NCBI GenBank assembly: GCA_000708835.1
Contig: DF237291.1
Location: forward strand, 1-64,000
DNA from: Klebsormidium nitens
Lineage: Eukaryota > Plantae > Klebsormidiophyceae
Direction: 5' to 3'
Length of the DNA: 64,000 nucleotides
Part shown: piece by piece, positions 5,901 through 52,338 of the stretch
How the letters are laid out: every line of letters starts with the position of its first letter
Position numbering within the stretch: position 1 is the stretch's first letter
Made by a program: the position numbers and the translations under genes
The notes under the pieces: model-generated
Seen by the model: the letters and a program-made list of their open reading frames with translations, nothing else
What the model was told of the DNA's origin: nothing
Databases searched by the model: none

Positions 5901-8088
5901 GCCACACCCACAACCTTCCAATTGGAGTTCATGCCCCCAGAGCCAAAGTCCATGACTGCGGGCCCTCCGCTGTTTCCCGGGTTGATGGCAGCGTCGATCT
6001 GGACCGCCAGTAGGAGGCCCGCCCCATGCGCGTACTGTGTCAGCTCCACGCGTGATACCACCCCTGCTGTCACGGAGATGTTGTCACCGCCTGAACAGAG
6101 AAGTTGAACATTCGTGATCGGCTACCCCCGAAATGCCACGAACGACAGAAGTTTTGACCAACGGCAAGTATTAGAGAACGGCTTTGTCCCTCGGCGAACT
6201 TGTTTGCCTCACATGCTCAATGGGAGGAATTTCTTGTCCGGACAGAATCGAACATCCTCTGTATACACAACGCATCAAAAGTGCTGCCCAATGGCTCAAG
6301 GTGCATGTGCCTTTCAAGCTCTCTGCTAATCCACCAGGAATCGTGAGACTATCCACATTGATGAACGCAGGTCGTTTCTAAGACCGGAACGAAGCAGATC
6401 TGACCCAAGACAAGTCGTCTTCGTTTTGTTACAGAATTGAACCTAGCAGTGTCTCCAGATTGTCTTCCAAACAAACACTCGGCACTCGGAACAAACTTTT
6501 CTGTCACGATTCTCGCAGAACAAGCCGCTCTGAAACCCCCACCTTGCGGGTAGCCCACAACGGCCACTTGTTCCTGCAGCTGCGGGATCTCCCCGAACTC
6601 AAGGGGGTGCATGCCCTCCCAGAAGTCGTCGTTGGGGACCTTGAGCACGGCCAGGTCACACTCATGCCCCACCGCCTCCACCTCCGCGCGGTACTTGGTG
6701 CTGGTGCCGTGCTTGCGCACCAGCACAAACGTCTGGTTGGCCACCACGTGTGCGTTGGTTAGGATGCGCTGCCCTGATATCACAAACCCTGCAGGGACAG
6801 AATGTGTGAGCAGGGGCTAATACGACGGACTCTCTGTGCAACAACGAAGTAATCTTTGCGACTTGATTGCATGGCGGCAAGATCACAGTTTCGAACACTG
6901 AAGTGGCCCAAGGGCCTCGAGACATTTGGCGTCCCAGAAACAGTAGCAATCCGAAATAAGACTGCCAGAACTGACTCGATGGGCTGGAACAATTCTTTTT
7001 TTTGAACTCTGGAATTGTATGGATGGGCCTCCTCAAGAATCATAATGAGAACTGCAGTTGATGAAGTAGTGGTGGGGTACTTCGAGTTGAAATCAGGCCC
7101 AAAGTAGAGTAGTCGATGCCCAATACTGCTGCGTGCAGGAACTTTTCTGAAAAATCCACGCACAATTCCCGTACGTTTGGAACGCAGAGTACCAAACGGC
7201 AATGAGCAGGGAACCGCGTAGCTCACCTGAGCCAGAGACTTCCCGCTGCGGCTTGTTTTGCCATGGCAGGAAGTAGTTCGGACTTGACGTGACGGTGAAG
7301 ATCTTGACGACTGCATCGAGTGGAGGGGGGCTGGCCAGGAAGGGCATCATGGCATTGGGGTAGCTGTGGAGGGGCACCGGGGGGCCAGTGTGGGCTGTCG
7401 GAACCAGGTCGGCTGCCTCGGGGGGGTCCACCAGCTGGTCCCCATCATCGCCAAGGAACCTGGTGTAGTGCGAGCGAGCGCCGGCCACTTTCCAGCAAGT
7501 GGCGCGAGCTGTGCGGAGCGGTTGGCTTGAAAAGGGCGACGGCGAGGTCAAGCTAGAAGAAGAGAGATACTTGGAGGAGGCTCCGCGAAAAAGTGTCCGG
7601 AAAGTGTCATGGCTGGCCCACGCTGAGCCGCTCGGTGGTAATGGTGGACGAATACTGAGCGCCCGCGTGCTCTTAGCGGCCACCGTTTGTATTGAATCGA
7701 AGACAGCCGGAGGGGACAATCCGTGCGAAGGGGCTTCGAGGAACATCTCCAGTGCAGGGACACCGCTTGCGCTTTCAAGAAATGGCGAATGCTCCACAGC
7801 AGGTCGGCTCACAGAAAGCCCCCAGCGCACCTTTGACTGAAGCGTAATTTCCAAAGGTCGTTTTAGCGCCGAGCCGTATGTCTGGTTGACGCTGCTTCTG
7901 ACGCCAGATGTATTCAGCGCTGACGCCAGTTCTCCCTTCAGAACAGAAGTAGCTGCAGAATTGTTGGAGACGTGCCTACCAGAGGGTGCACTCCCCTCCG
8001 CAAAGAAAGACAGCTCACGCAAAAAGCGACCGCCCCAAGGAAGTGCCCACTCGGCCGCAGCGCGCCTCCGGAGAACACCCGAAAGCAT
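2994..8088 (-). CDS. DEG10: Deg/HtrA serine protease, DEG10-like, with PDZ domains (~759 aa, 8 exons)
   Basis: Exons 8088-7227, 6788-6543, 6090-5868, 5389-5130, 4795-4668, 4304-4101, 3648-3598 (51-bp exon [17 protein letters not shown], absent from the ORF track), 3299-2994. Intact triad NAHVV / ECDLA / GNSGG. Motifs [22 protein letters not shown] and [23 protein letters not shown] match plant DEG10. Arg-rich N-terminus resembles a mitochondrial presequence. Confidence 0.93.
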
Positions 8089-11733: not shown

Positions 11734-11951
11734 AGTTGCAATGCTTGTTTTACATGGGCCATTAAAAACCTTCCTGGACGTGGAGAAGGAAAAGGTACCA
11801 TGCTTGAGTTGCAAAGAAGCAGATTGATGTGCTTAAGTCTGGAGTTGCAATGCTTGTTTTACATGGGCCATTAAAAACCTTCCCGGACGTGGAGAAGGAA
11901 AAGGTACCATGCTTGAGTTGCAAAGAAGCAGATTGATGTGCTTAAGTCTGG
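11734..11951. repeat. Tandem duplication, 2 x 109 bp
   Basis: Unit AGTTGCAATGCTTGTTTTACATGGGCC...GTGCTTAAGTCTGG starts at 11734 and 11843. I see one mismatch (CCTGG vs CCCGG). Confidence 0.92.
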
Positions 11952-19700: not shown

Positions 19701-20058
19701 GTCCTGGTCAGTGCAACATTGAGATTTGGCCGCTGGTTGCACCACTTAGGCTGTCGTGCCGCCCCTCCGACCAACACAATATCTGCCTCTTTCGTGACAA
19801 GGCTGTAACTTCGAACGTCTGACGTCAAGGCTTTGCAAGGCGCGATGTCTCAGACCTAAGGTGAGGCAGAATATGAGACCGTCCTGTGTTTGCGCCCCGT
19901 AGCTGACTCCCCTGTTGGTGCGTTGGCAGGTGAACAAGTACGACCAGACGGACGACTGGTTCCGCAGCCTGGTACGCTGCCTAAATTGGAACGAGCGGCT
20001 CGAACAGAAGGCCTTCTCCCTGCCAAATCTGGGCGGCGGGTATGAGGACGAGTACTAG
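13719..20058 (+). CDS. NADK2: Chloroplastic NAD kinase 2 (~1179 aa, 10 exons)
   Basis: Exons 13719-14108, 14397-14516, 14891-15073, 15330-16505, 16803-17564, 17889-18152, 18538-18762, 19063-19239, 19471-19584, 19930-20058. Kinase motifs [44 protein letters not shown]2-specific segments [24 protein letters not shown] and [34 protein letters not shown]. Confidence 0.95.
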
Positions 20059-46132: not shown

Positions 46133-49100
46133 TCAGCGGATGGCCAGCTGCGTGAGGTGCGTCCATGTGGGCCGGCGGTAGCGGCGCAGCAGCAGGCTGG
46201 AGCAGACGACCGAGACGGACGAGAAGGCCATGGCGGCGCCGGCCACCCACGGCGGCAGCCGCACGCGCGCGGCCGGGTACAGCGCGCCTGCCGCGATGGG
46301 GATGCCCAGCAGGTTGTACCCGACGGCCCAGCCGTAGTTGAGCAGGATGCGCCGGAAGGTGGCGCGCGCCAGGTGGATGGCGGTGACGACGTCCTCCAGG
46401 TTGCTGCGGATGAGCACGCAGTCCGCGGCCTCGATGGCGATGTCCGTGCCCGCCCCGATGGCCAGGCCCACGTCCGCGGCCGCCAGCGCGGGGCTGTCGT
46501 TCACGCCGTCCCCGACCATGGCCACGCACGTGCCGCGCGCCTGCAGCTCGCGCACCAGGGCGGCCTTGCCCGCGGGGAGCACCTCCGCGTACACCTCGCC
46601 GATGCCCACCTGGCACGCGGGAGGAAGCGCAGAGTGAGCAAACACAGGTGCGAACATTGGCTCCTCGGAGTGGTTTTGAGGAACGGGGACGCGAATTCGA
46701 GGACCTAGCCGCCCTTGTAACAGCTTTCAAATCAGATCGTGTCTCCTCCTCTTGGCGACTCAATGAAACAGTGAAAAGGTAGGTGGCCGTACGAATTGAA
46801 CAAAGACGCCTTCTTAGATCTACCAAAATCAGTCCTGATTCCAACGTCAAGCGCTAGTCGCGCACCTCGTGTGCGATGCCCCGAGCGGTGCTCCAGTTGT
46901 CGCCCGTCATCATGACGCTGCGGATGCCCATGCTGCGCAGCGCCGCCACCACTGCGGCCGCCTCCGGCTTCACCGGGTCCGACACGGCCAGCCCCGCCGC
47001 GAGCTGCCCGTCCACCGCCACCAGCAGCCCCGTGCGCGCCGCGAGCTCGCCCGCCGCCAAAAACTCCTCCGCGCCCAGGCCGATCCGCACGCCACGCGCG
47101 TCCATGAGCCGGCGGTTGCCCACCAGCACCTCGCGCCCCTTGACGCGCCCGCGCACGCCCTGCCCCACGATCGCCTCGAACTCGTCCGCGCGCTGCATCC
47201 AGCTCGTGTCCGTCACGCCCGACGACGACAAAGCGGGCGGCAGCGCCGGGCCGCTCGCCGTGTAGCGCGCGTGCGAGAGAATGGCTGTTGCGAGGGGGTG
47301 CTCGCTGTGCGCTTCCACCGCGGCCGCCAGCGGCAGCACGTCCGACAGGCGGTGCAGGCCGAACTCGCGGGAGGCGGTCACGGTGGGACGGCCCACGGTC
47401 AAAGTGCCCGTCTTGTCGAACACCACGCAGCGCACCTGCAAAAAGGGAAAGGACGGCGTTATAGATGTTTCGAGGGCCGGGGGAGGACGGCAGAGATTGA
47501 CAAGCGCCGTATTAAGGAGGGCAAACTGAGGAAGTCCGCGGAGCTGTGCCCAAAGCCACAAGCAAGTCGATCACGGAACCTCCTGACACCTCCATCTTTG
47601 AGCCTTGGCTCGCAGAAGCAGGAAAACATCTCGATGTCGCAGCATGGCGCCAGACAACATGCAAGGCATTACTATATGAACTTTCTTGAGTGCATGTGTC
47701 CTCAAAAGTAGCCAGGTGCCCCGTTTTCGTACGCAAGTGTCGGGCCAGCTGGGGCTTACGTTGTGCGCCTTCTCGAGCGCCTCCCCGCCCTTGATCAGTA
47801 TGCCATTGGTTGCGCCGATCCCCGTGGCGACCATGACGGCGGTGGGCGTGGCCAGCCCCAGCGCGCACGGGCACGCGATGACCAGCACCGAGATGCCGAA
47901 GAGGAACGCGAGCAGAAAGTGGTCCGTGGAGGCCGGCAGCCACGCCGCGGGGTAGCCGCCCGTCACGCCCGCCACGTACCAGCCCAGCCACGTCAGCACG
48001 GCCGCCAGCACGACGAGGGGCACGAAGATGGCGGACACGCGGTCCGCAAACTTCTGGATGGGCGCCTTGCTCAGCTGCGCAGCGGTGACCAGGCGCACAA
48101 TCTGGGGAGGGGGGGGAGACGGCAGTGTCTTTCACTTGTGCCGACCGCTTCACATCAACACAGGCTTGGCTGCTTAGGCAATCACGTATGTCAGCTTTTT
48201 CCTGGACGAGGAAAAGTGTTTTGACGCGACAATTTCTTGTGTTCATCCTGCTATTATGCACGTGCCAGCAAGCTCGATGCACAGGTGACCTAGGCGTCCG
48301 TGTGTGTCAGCCCGGCCGCTTCCCCGCCCTCCCTTGCTGCCGTGGCCTAGTGCCTCACCTGCGCCAGCGCCGTGTCCCCCCCCACATGCACCGCGCGCAC
48401 GTGCAGCGCGCCATGCGTGTTGAGGGTACCCGTGATGACGTTGTCGCCCACGTGCTTGGACACCGGCCGCGCCTCGCCCGTAACCATGCTTTCGTTCACG
48501 TGACTACTCCCCCACTTGACCACGCCGTCAGCAGGAATCTGCAGAATAGAAACTTTAGCTCGAAGGTTGGGCTTGGCACTTGGGGTACTTTATATGTTCG
48601 ATGAGAAGCGGGCTCAACAGCGCCTCATCAAGAGGTGTCCATCGTGTGAGCTTTTGCGTTTCTAGCGGGGCAGCATATCAGTATAATCAGGCATAGCGAC
48701 AGGACCACTTTGGAAGCCGAAATGATTGATCTTACCTCCCTTATGACACGTCGTGAAAGTGCCCTGCGAAGAATTGCCTCAAATTGAACGGCAAGAAGGT
48801 TCCCTCAAGATAATCACTCAGTCATGAACCCGATGTCCGCACGTTATGTTTCTGACTACTTGCTAAAGGAGAAAACAAAAGTCGAACCACCCGTCCAGCC
48901 TGGTTCATCGTGTGGGATTTGGATCTCAACCTCTCGTGCGCACCCGTGCGTGCTCACCTTGGCCCCTGGCGGCACCTTGAGCGTGTCCCCCCGTTGGATG
49001 AGGAAGGCCTCGATCTCCTGCTCGCTCACCCCGCGGCCGTTCGCGTCCAGCGTCAGCAGCGTGGCCGTCGACGGGGCCAGCCGCAGCAGCGCGCTGATGG

Positions 49101-52100
49101 CGGACCCCGTCCGGCCTGGACACACAAGCAGACGGCGGCAGACATCATCGCAGGAAGAAGCGAAGTCCGCAACAGTCCGCAAAAGTCCGCAGACAACTGT
49201 TTGACGGTGGCACAGGAGCGTGAAAGCCTTCTGGACGTCCGAAACAAAAAACTGCCTTTTTAAACTTCGGGCTCTTGCCGGGCCGCTGGTAATCTAAACC
49301 CTGCCCATGAAGACTGCCCGTATGTCAGCATAGGTAGTCCGCATGTTAAGTCCGCATGTTAAAAAAAGGCACAGCTGCAGATGGGTTTCCGCTAATGATG
49401 TCGGAACTTTCCAACATCACATACACCCTCGATCTGATGTTGGATATTTCCATCATCATTTAGAGCCAAAGCGTTGAGGTTGTGAGTTTCCTACTTCGCA
49501 CTATATTGTTGATTGTAATGTTGGAACTTTCCAACATCACATACAACCAGATTTCTCATGTTGGAACTTTCCAACATCACATACACTCTCAATCTGATGT
49601 TGGATGTTTTAACATAAAATTAATGGTTCACAGTCATGTCAAGGAAATATCCAACTTCAAAAAGCATCCATCCACATTTGATGTTGGAATTTTCCAACAT
49701 CAAGTACAGCCGAAGAATCCACTTATGTTGGAACTTTCCAACTGAGTTTTTGAGGCAACCCGGTGAATTTAGAATTTCCCAATTCTACAAAGTATCTAGC
49801 TAGACGTAATGTTGGAAGTCCCAACCTCATTTAAAGCCAAAGCAAACTCCATCTTCATCAAATGTCCAGCCGAATCTGATGTTGAAACTATCCAACATCA
49901 CGTACACCCTCAATTGCTCACCAAAAGCTTGTGTTCACGGTGAGGTTGAGATTTTCAACTTCAAAAAATATCCAGCCGCAACTGATTTTGGGGCTTTCCA
50001 ACATCACATACAGCCAGATAATCTGAAGTTGGAACTTTCCAACTTCACTTAGATCCAAATTGGTGAATCTCAAAGTTTCCAACTCCACAAAGTATCTAGC
50101 TAGATGTACTGTTGGACAATTGCAACCTCATTTAAGCCAACGCAGTTTCCATCTTCCCGGTGATTATAGCACCGAACAGCAAGTCAATACTAGCTAAAAT
50201 CAGCGATCAGAGGCTCCAGAGTCGTGCAAAACACTACGATCTTTTGCCAGAGTCGCTTCTTAAGACACCCTATGACAATCTCCATGCAATCAAGCACCGA
50301 GCACCACCAACTGGTTAAGAGAATGGCCAACGCTCAGGATCCTGGTCTTTTCAGGAACCGCTGCCGCTGGCTCGGCTGGTTGTGTGGTGCGCGCTCACCC
50401 TTGGCGAGCACCTCGAGGTACTTGCCGAGCAGGATGAAGGTGATGAGCATGGCGGCCGTCTCAAAGAAGTCGGACGCGTGGAACGACGGCCGCACCGCCG
50501 CGTACACCAGGCTCCCCACGCTGTACCAGTAGGCCGCGTTGGTGCCCAGCACGATCAGCACGTCCATGTTGGCGCGCCCGTGCCGCAGGCTGCGCCACGC
50601 GCCGCGGTGGAAGCGCCACCCGATGCCGTACTCGACGGGGGTCGTGAAAGCCCAGCGCAGCCAGTCCCCCACCGTGAAGGCCCACACGCGCGTGCGCAGG
50701 GCGGCGTCCACCGCCGGGATGCGCGGCAGCACCATGGCCAGCAAGAACACCGGCACCGTGAGCGCGAGGCTCGCCAGGAACAGCCGCCGGTGCTTCATGA
50801 TCTCCGCGGCGCGGTCCACGCCCTGCCCCTGCGCGGGGTTGTGCAGTGCCACGCGGAACTGGCCTGGCCCCTGCTCGCCAGCGCCCTTCACTGCCTCAAA
50901 GATGGTGCGCAGCCCCGTGCGGTCGGGGTCAAACACGACCGCCACCCGGTCGCCGGCCTCGGGGTGCACGCACGCCTCGCGGATGCCGGGGCTGGCCAGC
51001 AGGGTGCGCACCACGGCGGCACGGTCGGCGTCCGAGTCCATGCCAGCAACGGAGAGGGTGACCTTGTCCTTCTGACCCGTGTCCAGTACAGCCGCCTCGT
51101 ACCCGGCGTCTTCCACCGCCTGGATCAGCGCCCGCTCACTCACCACCCTGCGGCAGAAGGAGGCAGTGAGGACCAGGGCATAAGACCCCTGAGACGGGTA
51201 CACGGTGTGATGGTGCACTTCATGGACAGTGTTGTGGCTCTCAGAAAGGGGGCCCGAGGACAGGCGCATAAGTAGTCAACAGGTTTTATCGAAGATAAGG
51301 CAGCGCTTGGGGAGTTGGCTTCAGAACCGTGGCAATGCTGTGGCCCAAGCATTGTGTGGCCAGCCGCACAGGCAGGGCGAGCAGCCCACCTGGAGTCATA
51401 CTCGACCTCTGCCTCCGCTGTGGCCAGCGCCACCACCGCTTTGCGCACTCCGCGCACCCCCGCCAGCGCGTGCTCCACCGCTCCCACGCACGTGGAGCAG
51501 GTCATGCCCTGCACCCGCAAGCGGGCCAGCACCACGCGGAAGCTGCGCCCTGCGTCCAGCTCTTGGACGTGCGCCTCGTAGCCCATGTCGTCCAGGGTCT
51601 CCACCAGATCCTCCTCCTGCAATGTGGAGCTCACCGTTTTGTTGCGACTGGAACGTGTTGGGTGCGAGGATACTGACGTGATACGAGTGAGCACGAGAGT
51701 TGTCCCAATGGGAGAAAGGGTAGCCACACTTATTTCACAATACAAGGTACTGACACAGTCACTTGATGTCTTTCTAGTACTAGCGCCTTGGGAAAGAAGC
51801 TTCTTTCAATGAGTAATATGAGGGACGCGAGGTGCTTTTGCTGTGATTGGAAGGAGTGATTTAGACCTGATTTGCCTAAAGCATCTTAGCTGATTCAAAC
51901 AGTGGGGTGCAAAAACGGTGATCAAGATGCACCACACACTACGTGCCTTTCCAACTCGACCTCTTTTGCAACAGCTCAAGATGCAGTTGACGGCTGCGTG
52001 CCCCGTACCATGACGATGTTTGCATCAAAGACCACCTCCGCCAGGTTCTGCATCAGCGACACCGACGCCGCCTCCACCCCCTCCACCTGCCGCAGCACTT

Positions 52101-52338
52101 TTTCCACGCTGGACGAGCACGCGGCGCACGTCATGCCGGACACGCTCAGGTACCGCGTCACCAGATCTTTGCTGGCGCTGCCGCTAGGGCCCTCATAAGG
52201 GCGCGTGCCCGCACTCGGCGATCGACCACTACCCAAATGCTGCTCGTTGGGACGTTGCGTGATTACAGACTGTATTTCGATGTTGGGGAGCAAGTGGTGG
52301 CCAGACGGAATGCGGTGCAACTCCAGCAATTGCTCCAT
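46133..52338 (-). CDS. HMA5: P1B-1 copper-transporting ATPase, HMA5-like (~1010 aa, 8 exons)
   Basis: Exons 52338-52009, 51616-51390, 51147-50399, 49115-48958, 48538-48359, 48101-47760, 47435-46866, 46609-46133. Metal-binding domains GMTCAAC and GMTCSTC plus a degenerate third (GMDSDAD). Also [49 protein letters not shown]. Start codon tentative. Confidence 0.94.
49393..50157. repeat. AT-rich array of palindromic 24-bp units (consensus TGATGTTGGAACTTTCCAACATCA) in HMA5 intron 3
   Basis: About 17 recognisable units at roughly 40-44 bp spacing. Near-consensus copies at about 49396, 49516, 49556, 49679, 49877, 50024. Higher-order duplication of exactly 300 bp (CAAAGTATCTAGCTAGA at 49788 and 50088). 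Confidence 0.9.

Follow-up and report, generated by a model that had tools for sequence, protein, structure and literature searches.

The stretch analysed here, called the window throughout, comprises the first 64,000 nucleotides of contig DF237291.1 of the streptophyte alga Klebsormidium nitens. The gene under study encodes a copper-transporting ATPase, one intron of which harbors an array of short palindromes, first noticed from the sequence as an AT-rich island within a GC-rich gene. The analysis is built on the following three features:

46133-52338, minus strand: host gene, a P1B-type copper-transporting ATPase (HMA5-like), from the public annotation (record DF237291.1, GCA_000708835.1), Pfam and homologues
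49116-50397, minus strand: host intron of 1282 bp, with GT at 50397-50396 and AG at 49117-49116
49396-50171, plus strand: degenerate array of some 20 tandem units (39-44 bp), from core matches, a 24-mer scan and segmentation

Positions 31789-54630 of the public record agree with the window at every base. The annotated product of the host gene comprises 1010 residues with HMA, E1-E2 ATPase and hydrolase domains. An exon-by-exon Pfam scan agrees with this annotation, returning three HMA domains, an E1-E2 ATPase domain and a HAD hydrolase domain. The CPC membrane motif was seen in the open reading frame (ORF) at 47571-48098, and the closest named relatives of the protein are plant HMA5-type copper ATPases. 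Across the host intron, the reading frame runs on from LEVLAKG into the next exon, and the GT and AG of the intron are found at the same codon and positions in three related sequences. An exact-protein look-up of the exon ORF adjoining the intron found no other record.

Scanning with the 24-mer, combined with manual segmentation, resolved positions 49396-50171 into a degenerate head-to-tail array of about 20 units (U1 to U20), spaced 39-44 bp apart. Each unit consists of a 24-bp palindrome, with 11-bp arms on either side of a 2-bp asymmetric centre, followed by a linker of 15-20 bp. The palindrome is still recognisable in 17 of the 20 units, U12, U14 and U20 being truncated. The original prediction, which described an array of 24-bp palindromes with 11-bp arms every 40-44 bp in an AT-rich island of a copper ATPase intron, is borne out by these measurements and by the base composition: the GC content of the array is 0.37-0.41, while that of the exons is 0.65-0.75 and that of the other introns about 0.46-0.54. 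Searched on both strands with up to three mismatches, the 20-mer core of the palindrome gave 14 matches, from 49398 to 50045, and none in shuffled sequences; under the same conditions, the remainder of the 64-kb window contained zero matches. Strong palindromes in general are also concentrated here, 8 of the 53 in the window falling within the 0.78 kb of the array, a density about ten times that of the remaining window.

The centre of the palindrome, CT on the plus strand, made it possible to read the orientation of the units. Matches to the asymmetric core on the plus strand carry 0-3 mismatches, while each match on the minus strand has at least two mismatches at the centre; wherever the centre is intact, the plus-strand match is better by exactly these two mismatches. 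All units therefore lie in the same orientation and form a direct array, and the class I linkers also keep a single orientation throughout. With head-to-tail units in the range of 10-100 bp and one orientation, the array has the structure of a tandem repeat, which upholds the satellite-like, palindrome-bearing nature proposed for it at the outset. The divergence of its copies is too great for Tandem Repeats Finder, which left it unreported at both thresholds. The window was also scanned against Rfam and for tRNAs, with no match, and the protein search with an 87-codon ORF running through the array was blank, which is weak evidence as gene callers seldom call such ORFs.

Above the level of the single unit, the array is organised in blocks:

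49396-49555, plus strand: partial block, U1-U4, 82% identity to U5-U8
49556-49876, plus strand: block A, U5-U12 (eight units), from segmentation and block alignment
49877-50171, plus strand: block B, U13-U20 (eight units), offset by 300-321 bp from block A, with 78.3% identity to it

The best partners of U10, U11 and U12 are U18, U19 and U20, each at an offset of exactly +300 bp, in agreement with the 300-bp block repeat that had been read from the sequence. In the alignment of block A with block B, identity is 78.3% over 290 columns (Kimura two-parameter distance, K2P, 0.26), with gaps at 36 positions, and U1-U4 represent part of a third block, 82% identical to U5-U8. A block of eight units and about 300 bp is thus repeated whole, in two copies. 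The latest growth step of the array is the tandem duplication of this block, an event of the kind produced by unequal exchange or replication slippage.

The comparison of orthologous introns suggested by the original prediction was carried out with relatives reached via the exon ORF adjoining the intron, which led to two Logan contigs (L005 and L006) and one Joint Genome Institute (JGI) metagenome contig (L007):

L005 (SRR23617307), sister lineage, syntenic over 20 kb: exon identity 91.3%, orthologous intron of 430 bp
L006 (SRR14092358), outgroup: exon identity 78.2%, orthologous intron of 421 bp
L007 (JGI metagenome), outgroup, 97.4% identical to L006: exon identity 78.2%, intron of about 390-400 bp

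Exon identity between L005 and L006/L007 is 77.0-77.2%. Given the 91.3% identity between K. nitens and L005 and the 77-78% of both with L006/L007, these last two lie outside the pair formed by K. nitens and L005. All three orthologous introns are short, and the 24-mer found no match in any of them with up to 7 mismatches. On either side, the intron of K. nitens can be matched to that of L005, over 50397-50209 and over 49258-49116; these homologous flanks enclose the following segment:

49259-50208, no strand assigned: K. nitens-specific intron segment of 950 bp, in place of which L005 has an unrelated 127 bp (L005 10544-10670)

No homology was detectable between these 127 bp of L005 and the K. 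nitens-specific segment, including its parts that flank the array. As the array is missing in both the sister and the outgroup, although the position and flanks of the intron are conserved, parsimony places the gain of the 950-bp segment on the K. nitens branch. A candidate seed or remnant in the introns of the relatives, a single 17/18 match in L006, was rejected, being neither kept in the near-identical L007 nor supported by shared words.

The same intron carries a second, much smaller set of repeats:

49164-49362, plus strand: two mini-arrays of the 8-mer AGTCCGCA, three copies with a period of 10 and two copies with a period of 13

The host intron accounts for all five copies of AGTCCGCA in the 64-kb window: the first mini-array spans 49164-49191 and the second 49336-49356. 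In the sister contig L005, only one related copy occurs, where the first mini-array lies in K. nitens; these short tandem duplications therefore arose in the host intron within the K. nitens lineage.

Two layers of divergence were then distinguished within the array. In the younger one, the arms of a palindrome change independently of each other. Arm complementarity is 7.82 of 11 positions within a unit and 7.67 between units (permutation P 0.27), the symmetric non-consensus double changes (5, with 3.5 expected; P 0.24) show no excess, and the perfect double change in U17 is within chance expectation. Between blocks A and B, 81.3% of the palindrome columns and 75.6% of the linker columns are identical, which is no clear difference. 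The divergence between the two blocks (K2P 0.26) also equals that between K. nitens and L005 in the intron flanks (K2P 0.24-0.27). The independence of the arms, the comparable identity of palindromes and linkers and the agreement of the two distances establish that, since the block duplication, both palindrome arms and linkers have been drifting at about the neutral rate, like ordinary intron DNA.

The older layer has another appearance. When pairs of units related as block partners are set aside, pairwise identity is 73% for palindromes (shuffle null 53%) and 51% for linkers (null 48%), the latter being near random. The few related linker classes described at first do exist, but linkers from units that are not block partners hardly exceed shuffled sequence in similarity. 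Since a neutral minisatellite would decay evenly along its unit, this contrast hints that, before the block duplication, the palindrome was subject to constraint or homogenisation from which the linkers were exempt. Divergence from unit to unit reaches 20-40%, and the arms differ from their consensus by about 18%, a value to be compared with a per-lineage divergence of roughly 12.5% since the split from L005. An arm divergence above that of the lineage itself, despite a sister without any array, would together with the palindrome/linker contrast favour the arrival of the array in a pre-formed and already diverged state.

Folding predictions were obtained for the array and for its units. As RNA, the whole array folds at -267.8 kcal/mol, compared with -200.8 kcal/mol for shuffled sequences (z -9.3), so that the string of hairpins envisaged for the pre-mRNA is possible. 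Single palindromes form 10-bp stems with 4-nt loops, at -4 to -9 kcal/mol as DNA and -11 to -13 kcal/mol as RNA. Neighbouring units can also pair in silico: U4 and U5 give a 72-nt RNA hairpin (-30.7 kcal/mol, z -6.6) in which 13 + 9 paired bases surround a small internal loop, and U1 and U2 a similar hairpin of 71-72 nt (-28.8 kcal/mol, z about -6.5). In silico, the U4+U5 hairpin has the stable transcript stem, at least about 21 bp long, that characterises a microRNA-like precursor. This folding is a consequence of palindromy and no evidence of function.

Based on these sequence comparisons, the array would be a lineage-specific, decaying minisatellite with a higher-order block, spliced out and devoid of a sequence-specific role today, a reading to which we assign a probability of about 0.62. 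It is most likely inert and removed by splicing. Regarding its origin, about half of the weight within this explanation goes to an array that would have arrived pre-formed, as the relic of a mobile-element array to whose sites a dimeric protein bound. Such a pre-formed array would be comparable to the repeat arrays found subterminally in Mutator, CACTA or hAT transposons. First, a binding-site relic would account for palindromes outlasting linkers in the older divergence layer. Secondly, it would account for the spacing of about 41 bp, close to four helical turns, which would align the sites along a single face of the helix. A precedent exists in Muta1, in which short conserved motifs, separated by variable linkers, form arrays that serve as platforms for transposase binding, more copies giving stronger binding (PMC5499845). 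To expansion in place, from a seed that is no longer recognisable, goes somewhat more than a third of the weight within the same explanation, so that an origin as a mobile-element relic is somewhat favoured over it.

Several observations weigh against this reading. The edges of the segment carry no terminal inverted repeats, the best local alignment between them scoring 14 for a shuffle mean of 14.4. In the comparison with L005, neither a clean empty site nor a target-site duplication could be made out, the unrelated 127 bp of the sister being replaced rather than interrupted and offering no exact junction. Searches for a second copy of the array were negative throughout the 64-kb window, the related contigs (about 45 kb, L005-L008) and the viral and prokaryotic collections. 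The AGTCCGCA mini-arrays, products of local slippage in the very same intron, demonstrate that short repeats do expand in place, which speaks against a pre-formed origin. Finally, the age argument is soft, as the neutral rate was set only by the alignable part of the intron, and a faster mutation of palindromic AT-rich repeats may weaken it further.

A bolder version of the mobile-element origin, tentative and clearly less probable than the decaying minisatellite, would make the array a stranded copy, non-autonomous or solo, of a family not yet described. This family would belong to a K. nitens-wide class in which each family has a private palindrome docking a dimeric protein encoded by the element, and the hairpins of the pre-mRNA could feed the silencing of the family.

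Membership in a dispersed and recognisable transposon family, of the miniature inverted-repeat transposable element (MITE), Mutator-like element (MULE), foldback or Helitron type, was also among the initial proposals. The array would then be a non-autonomous member, mobilisable in principle, whose palindromes would bind the transposase of that family. The lineage-specific, insertion-like character of the segment is consistent with this, as are the much better preservation of palindromes than of linkers in the old layer, a regular spacing of about 41 bp that suits a binding-site array, and the motif arrays with variable linkers of Muta1 (PMC5499845). The edges, however, lack terminal inverted repeats, visual inspection revealed no ends of Helitron type, neither a target-site duplication nor a clean empty site could be made out against L005, and no further copy occurs in the DNA compared (the 64-kb window and the related contigs). 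The single orientation of the units leaves no place for a foldback structure, and a unit divergence of 20-40% with independent decay of the arms would denote an element long dead. We therefore regard such a membership as unlikely.

It is more improbable still that the array serves as a source of small RNAs, with neighbouring palindromes pairing into hairpins of microRNA-precursor size from which a Dicer-like enzyme would release small RNAs directed at the host gene or related repeats. The RNA of the array does fold far better than shuffled sequences (z -9.3), and the U4+U5 and U1+U2 hairpins, of 71-72 nt and about 22 paired bases, reach z values of about -6.5. Such folding is nevertheless expected of any array of palindromes; few unit pairs are intact, no compensatory changes maintain their pairing, the array is missing from the related lineages and Rfam has no match to it.

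Functional heat-shock elements contain at least three contiguous, alternating nGAAn units. The heat-shock-element-like dyad pointed out in the palindrome is present as a two-unit GAAnnTTC core, intact in 6 units of the array, but it does not extend into a three-unit element: the two units (GGAAC/TTTCC) are flanked by ATGTT and AACAT, each of which matches one of the three core bases. A co-opted intronic regulatory array, on which a dimeric transcription factor (for example heat-shock-factor-like, on GAAnnTTC) would tune the copper ATPase gene, is accordingly the least probable of all readings: 6 of the 24 GAAnnTTC cores of the window do fall within this 0.78 kb, at a spacing close to four helical turns and in palindromes that outlast their linkers in the old layer, but the core has two nGAAn units only, with misfitting flanking pentamers, the array is missing from the sister and outgroup genes, and the palindromes show no specific constraint since the block duplication, their arms decaying independently.

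Among known systems, the array is a new example of a known sequence kind. Minisatellites with a higher-order structure, which include AT-rich, hairpin-forming repeats of the human FRA16B/FRA10B type, share with it head-to-tail units of tens of bp, block-wise duplication, an AT-rich composition, self-complementary units and a non-coding location. The algal copies differ in being old, 20-40% diverged, and in the persistence of the palindrome part over the linker in the older layer. Subterminal repeat arrays of DNA transposons are exemplified by the TnpA sites of En/Spm. Muta1, a MULE and type 2 foldback element, resembles the array in its conserved short motif, repeated many times, with the differences residing in the linkers (PMC5499845). 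Its repeats are 12 bp long with linkers of 3-4 bp, and form a pair of inverted terminal arms; the element also has a terminal motif and target-site duplications of 8-9 bp (PMC5499845). The algal array, in contrast, is single and direct, with 24-bp palindromes, linkers of 15-20 bp, no inverted arms and no recognisable termini or target-site duplication. In the absence of two inverted arms, all units being direct, a foldback transposon is ruled out. The Helentron-derived HINE/DINE-1 elements are non-coding, often intronic, and carry palindromes and sometimes large internal blocks of tandem repeats (PMC4067079). The algal segment is likewise non-coding, palindrome-bearing tandem-repeat DNA in an intron, but it shows no recognisable subterminal inverted repeats, no 3' stem-loop and no T-rich insertion site.

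The resemblance to arrays of clustered regularly interspaced short palindromic repeats (CRISPR), remarked upon and set aside in the original prediction, lies in a partly palindromic repeat alternating with a short spacer at a regular period. The assessment was correct: the array is located in a eukaryotic nuclear intron without cas genes, its repeats are diverged, and its spacers fall into recurring classes duplicated block-wise, unlike the individually acquired spacers of a CRISPR array. A CRISPR array is ruled out by the nuclear origin of this K. nitens DNA, by repeats that are 73% identical pairwise and by spacers that are inherited unit variants.

Collections of other sequences were scanned as well. 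A 22-mer of the palindrome had no match in the viral or prokaryotic collections. In four metagenome contigs of low GC, it was found as a lone palindrome each time, with no similarity in the flanks, and these occurrences were judged to be due to chance. Lone 24-mers identical to U8 were observed in two low-GC metagenome contigs from sister samples (L001, 4177-4200, and L003, 7425-7448), with no repeat or flank similarity, and were likewise attributed to chance. The two-palindrome pattern had no match in the viral collection. Its one match, at 7545-7625 of a Ruminococcaceae contig (L009), corresponds to a tandem duplication of a terminator-like palindrome pair of about 40 bp; its likeness to the array is confined to the 16-bp core GTTGGAAnnTTCCAAC, and it is unrelated.

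By itself, an array that roughly triples the length of one intron in the gene of a housekeeping copper pump matters little. As a dated example, with the empty state displayed by both the sister and the outgroup, it is of modest value and illustrates how palindrome-bearing repeats enter the introns of a streptophyte alga and decay there. The contrast between palindromes and linkers offers a testable hint that such arrays begin as protein-binding platforms of mobile elements. If the 24-mer were linked to an autonomous element, this locus would help to define a new transposon family in Klebsormidium.

Elsewhere in the window, the palindrome TGACGTCA has two sites, at 19820 and 32082, for 0.8 expected, and is not enriched. 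At 11734-11951, a 109-bp unit is repeated in tandem in 2.0 copies with 99% identity, which indicates a very recent local duplication. On the plus strand, a 473-codon ORF at 42122-43543 matches the 622-residue NCBI model KFL_003420100 with 100% identity along 99% of the ORF, the public model being longer than the uninterrupted ORF. UniRef names this product a cyclic nucleotide-binding domain protein, and its relatives are 84% identical in the L005 lineage and 62% identical in the L007 lineage.

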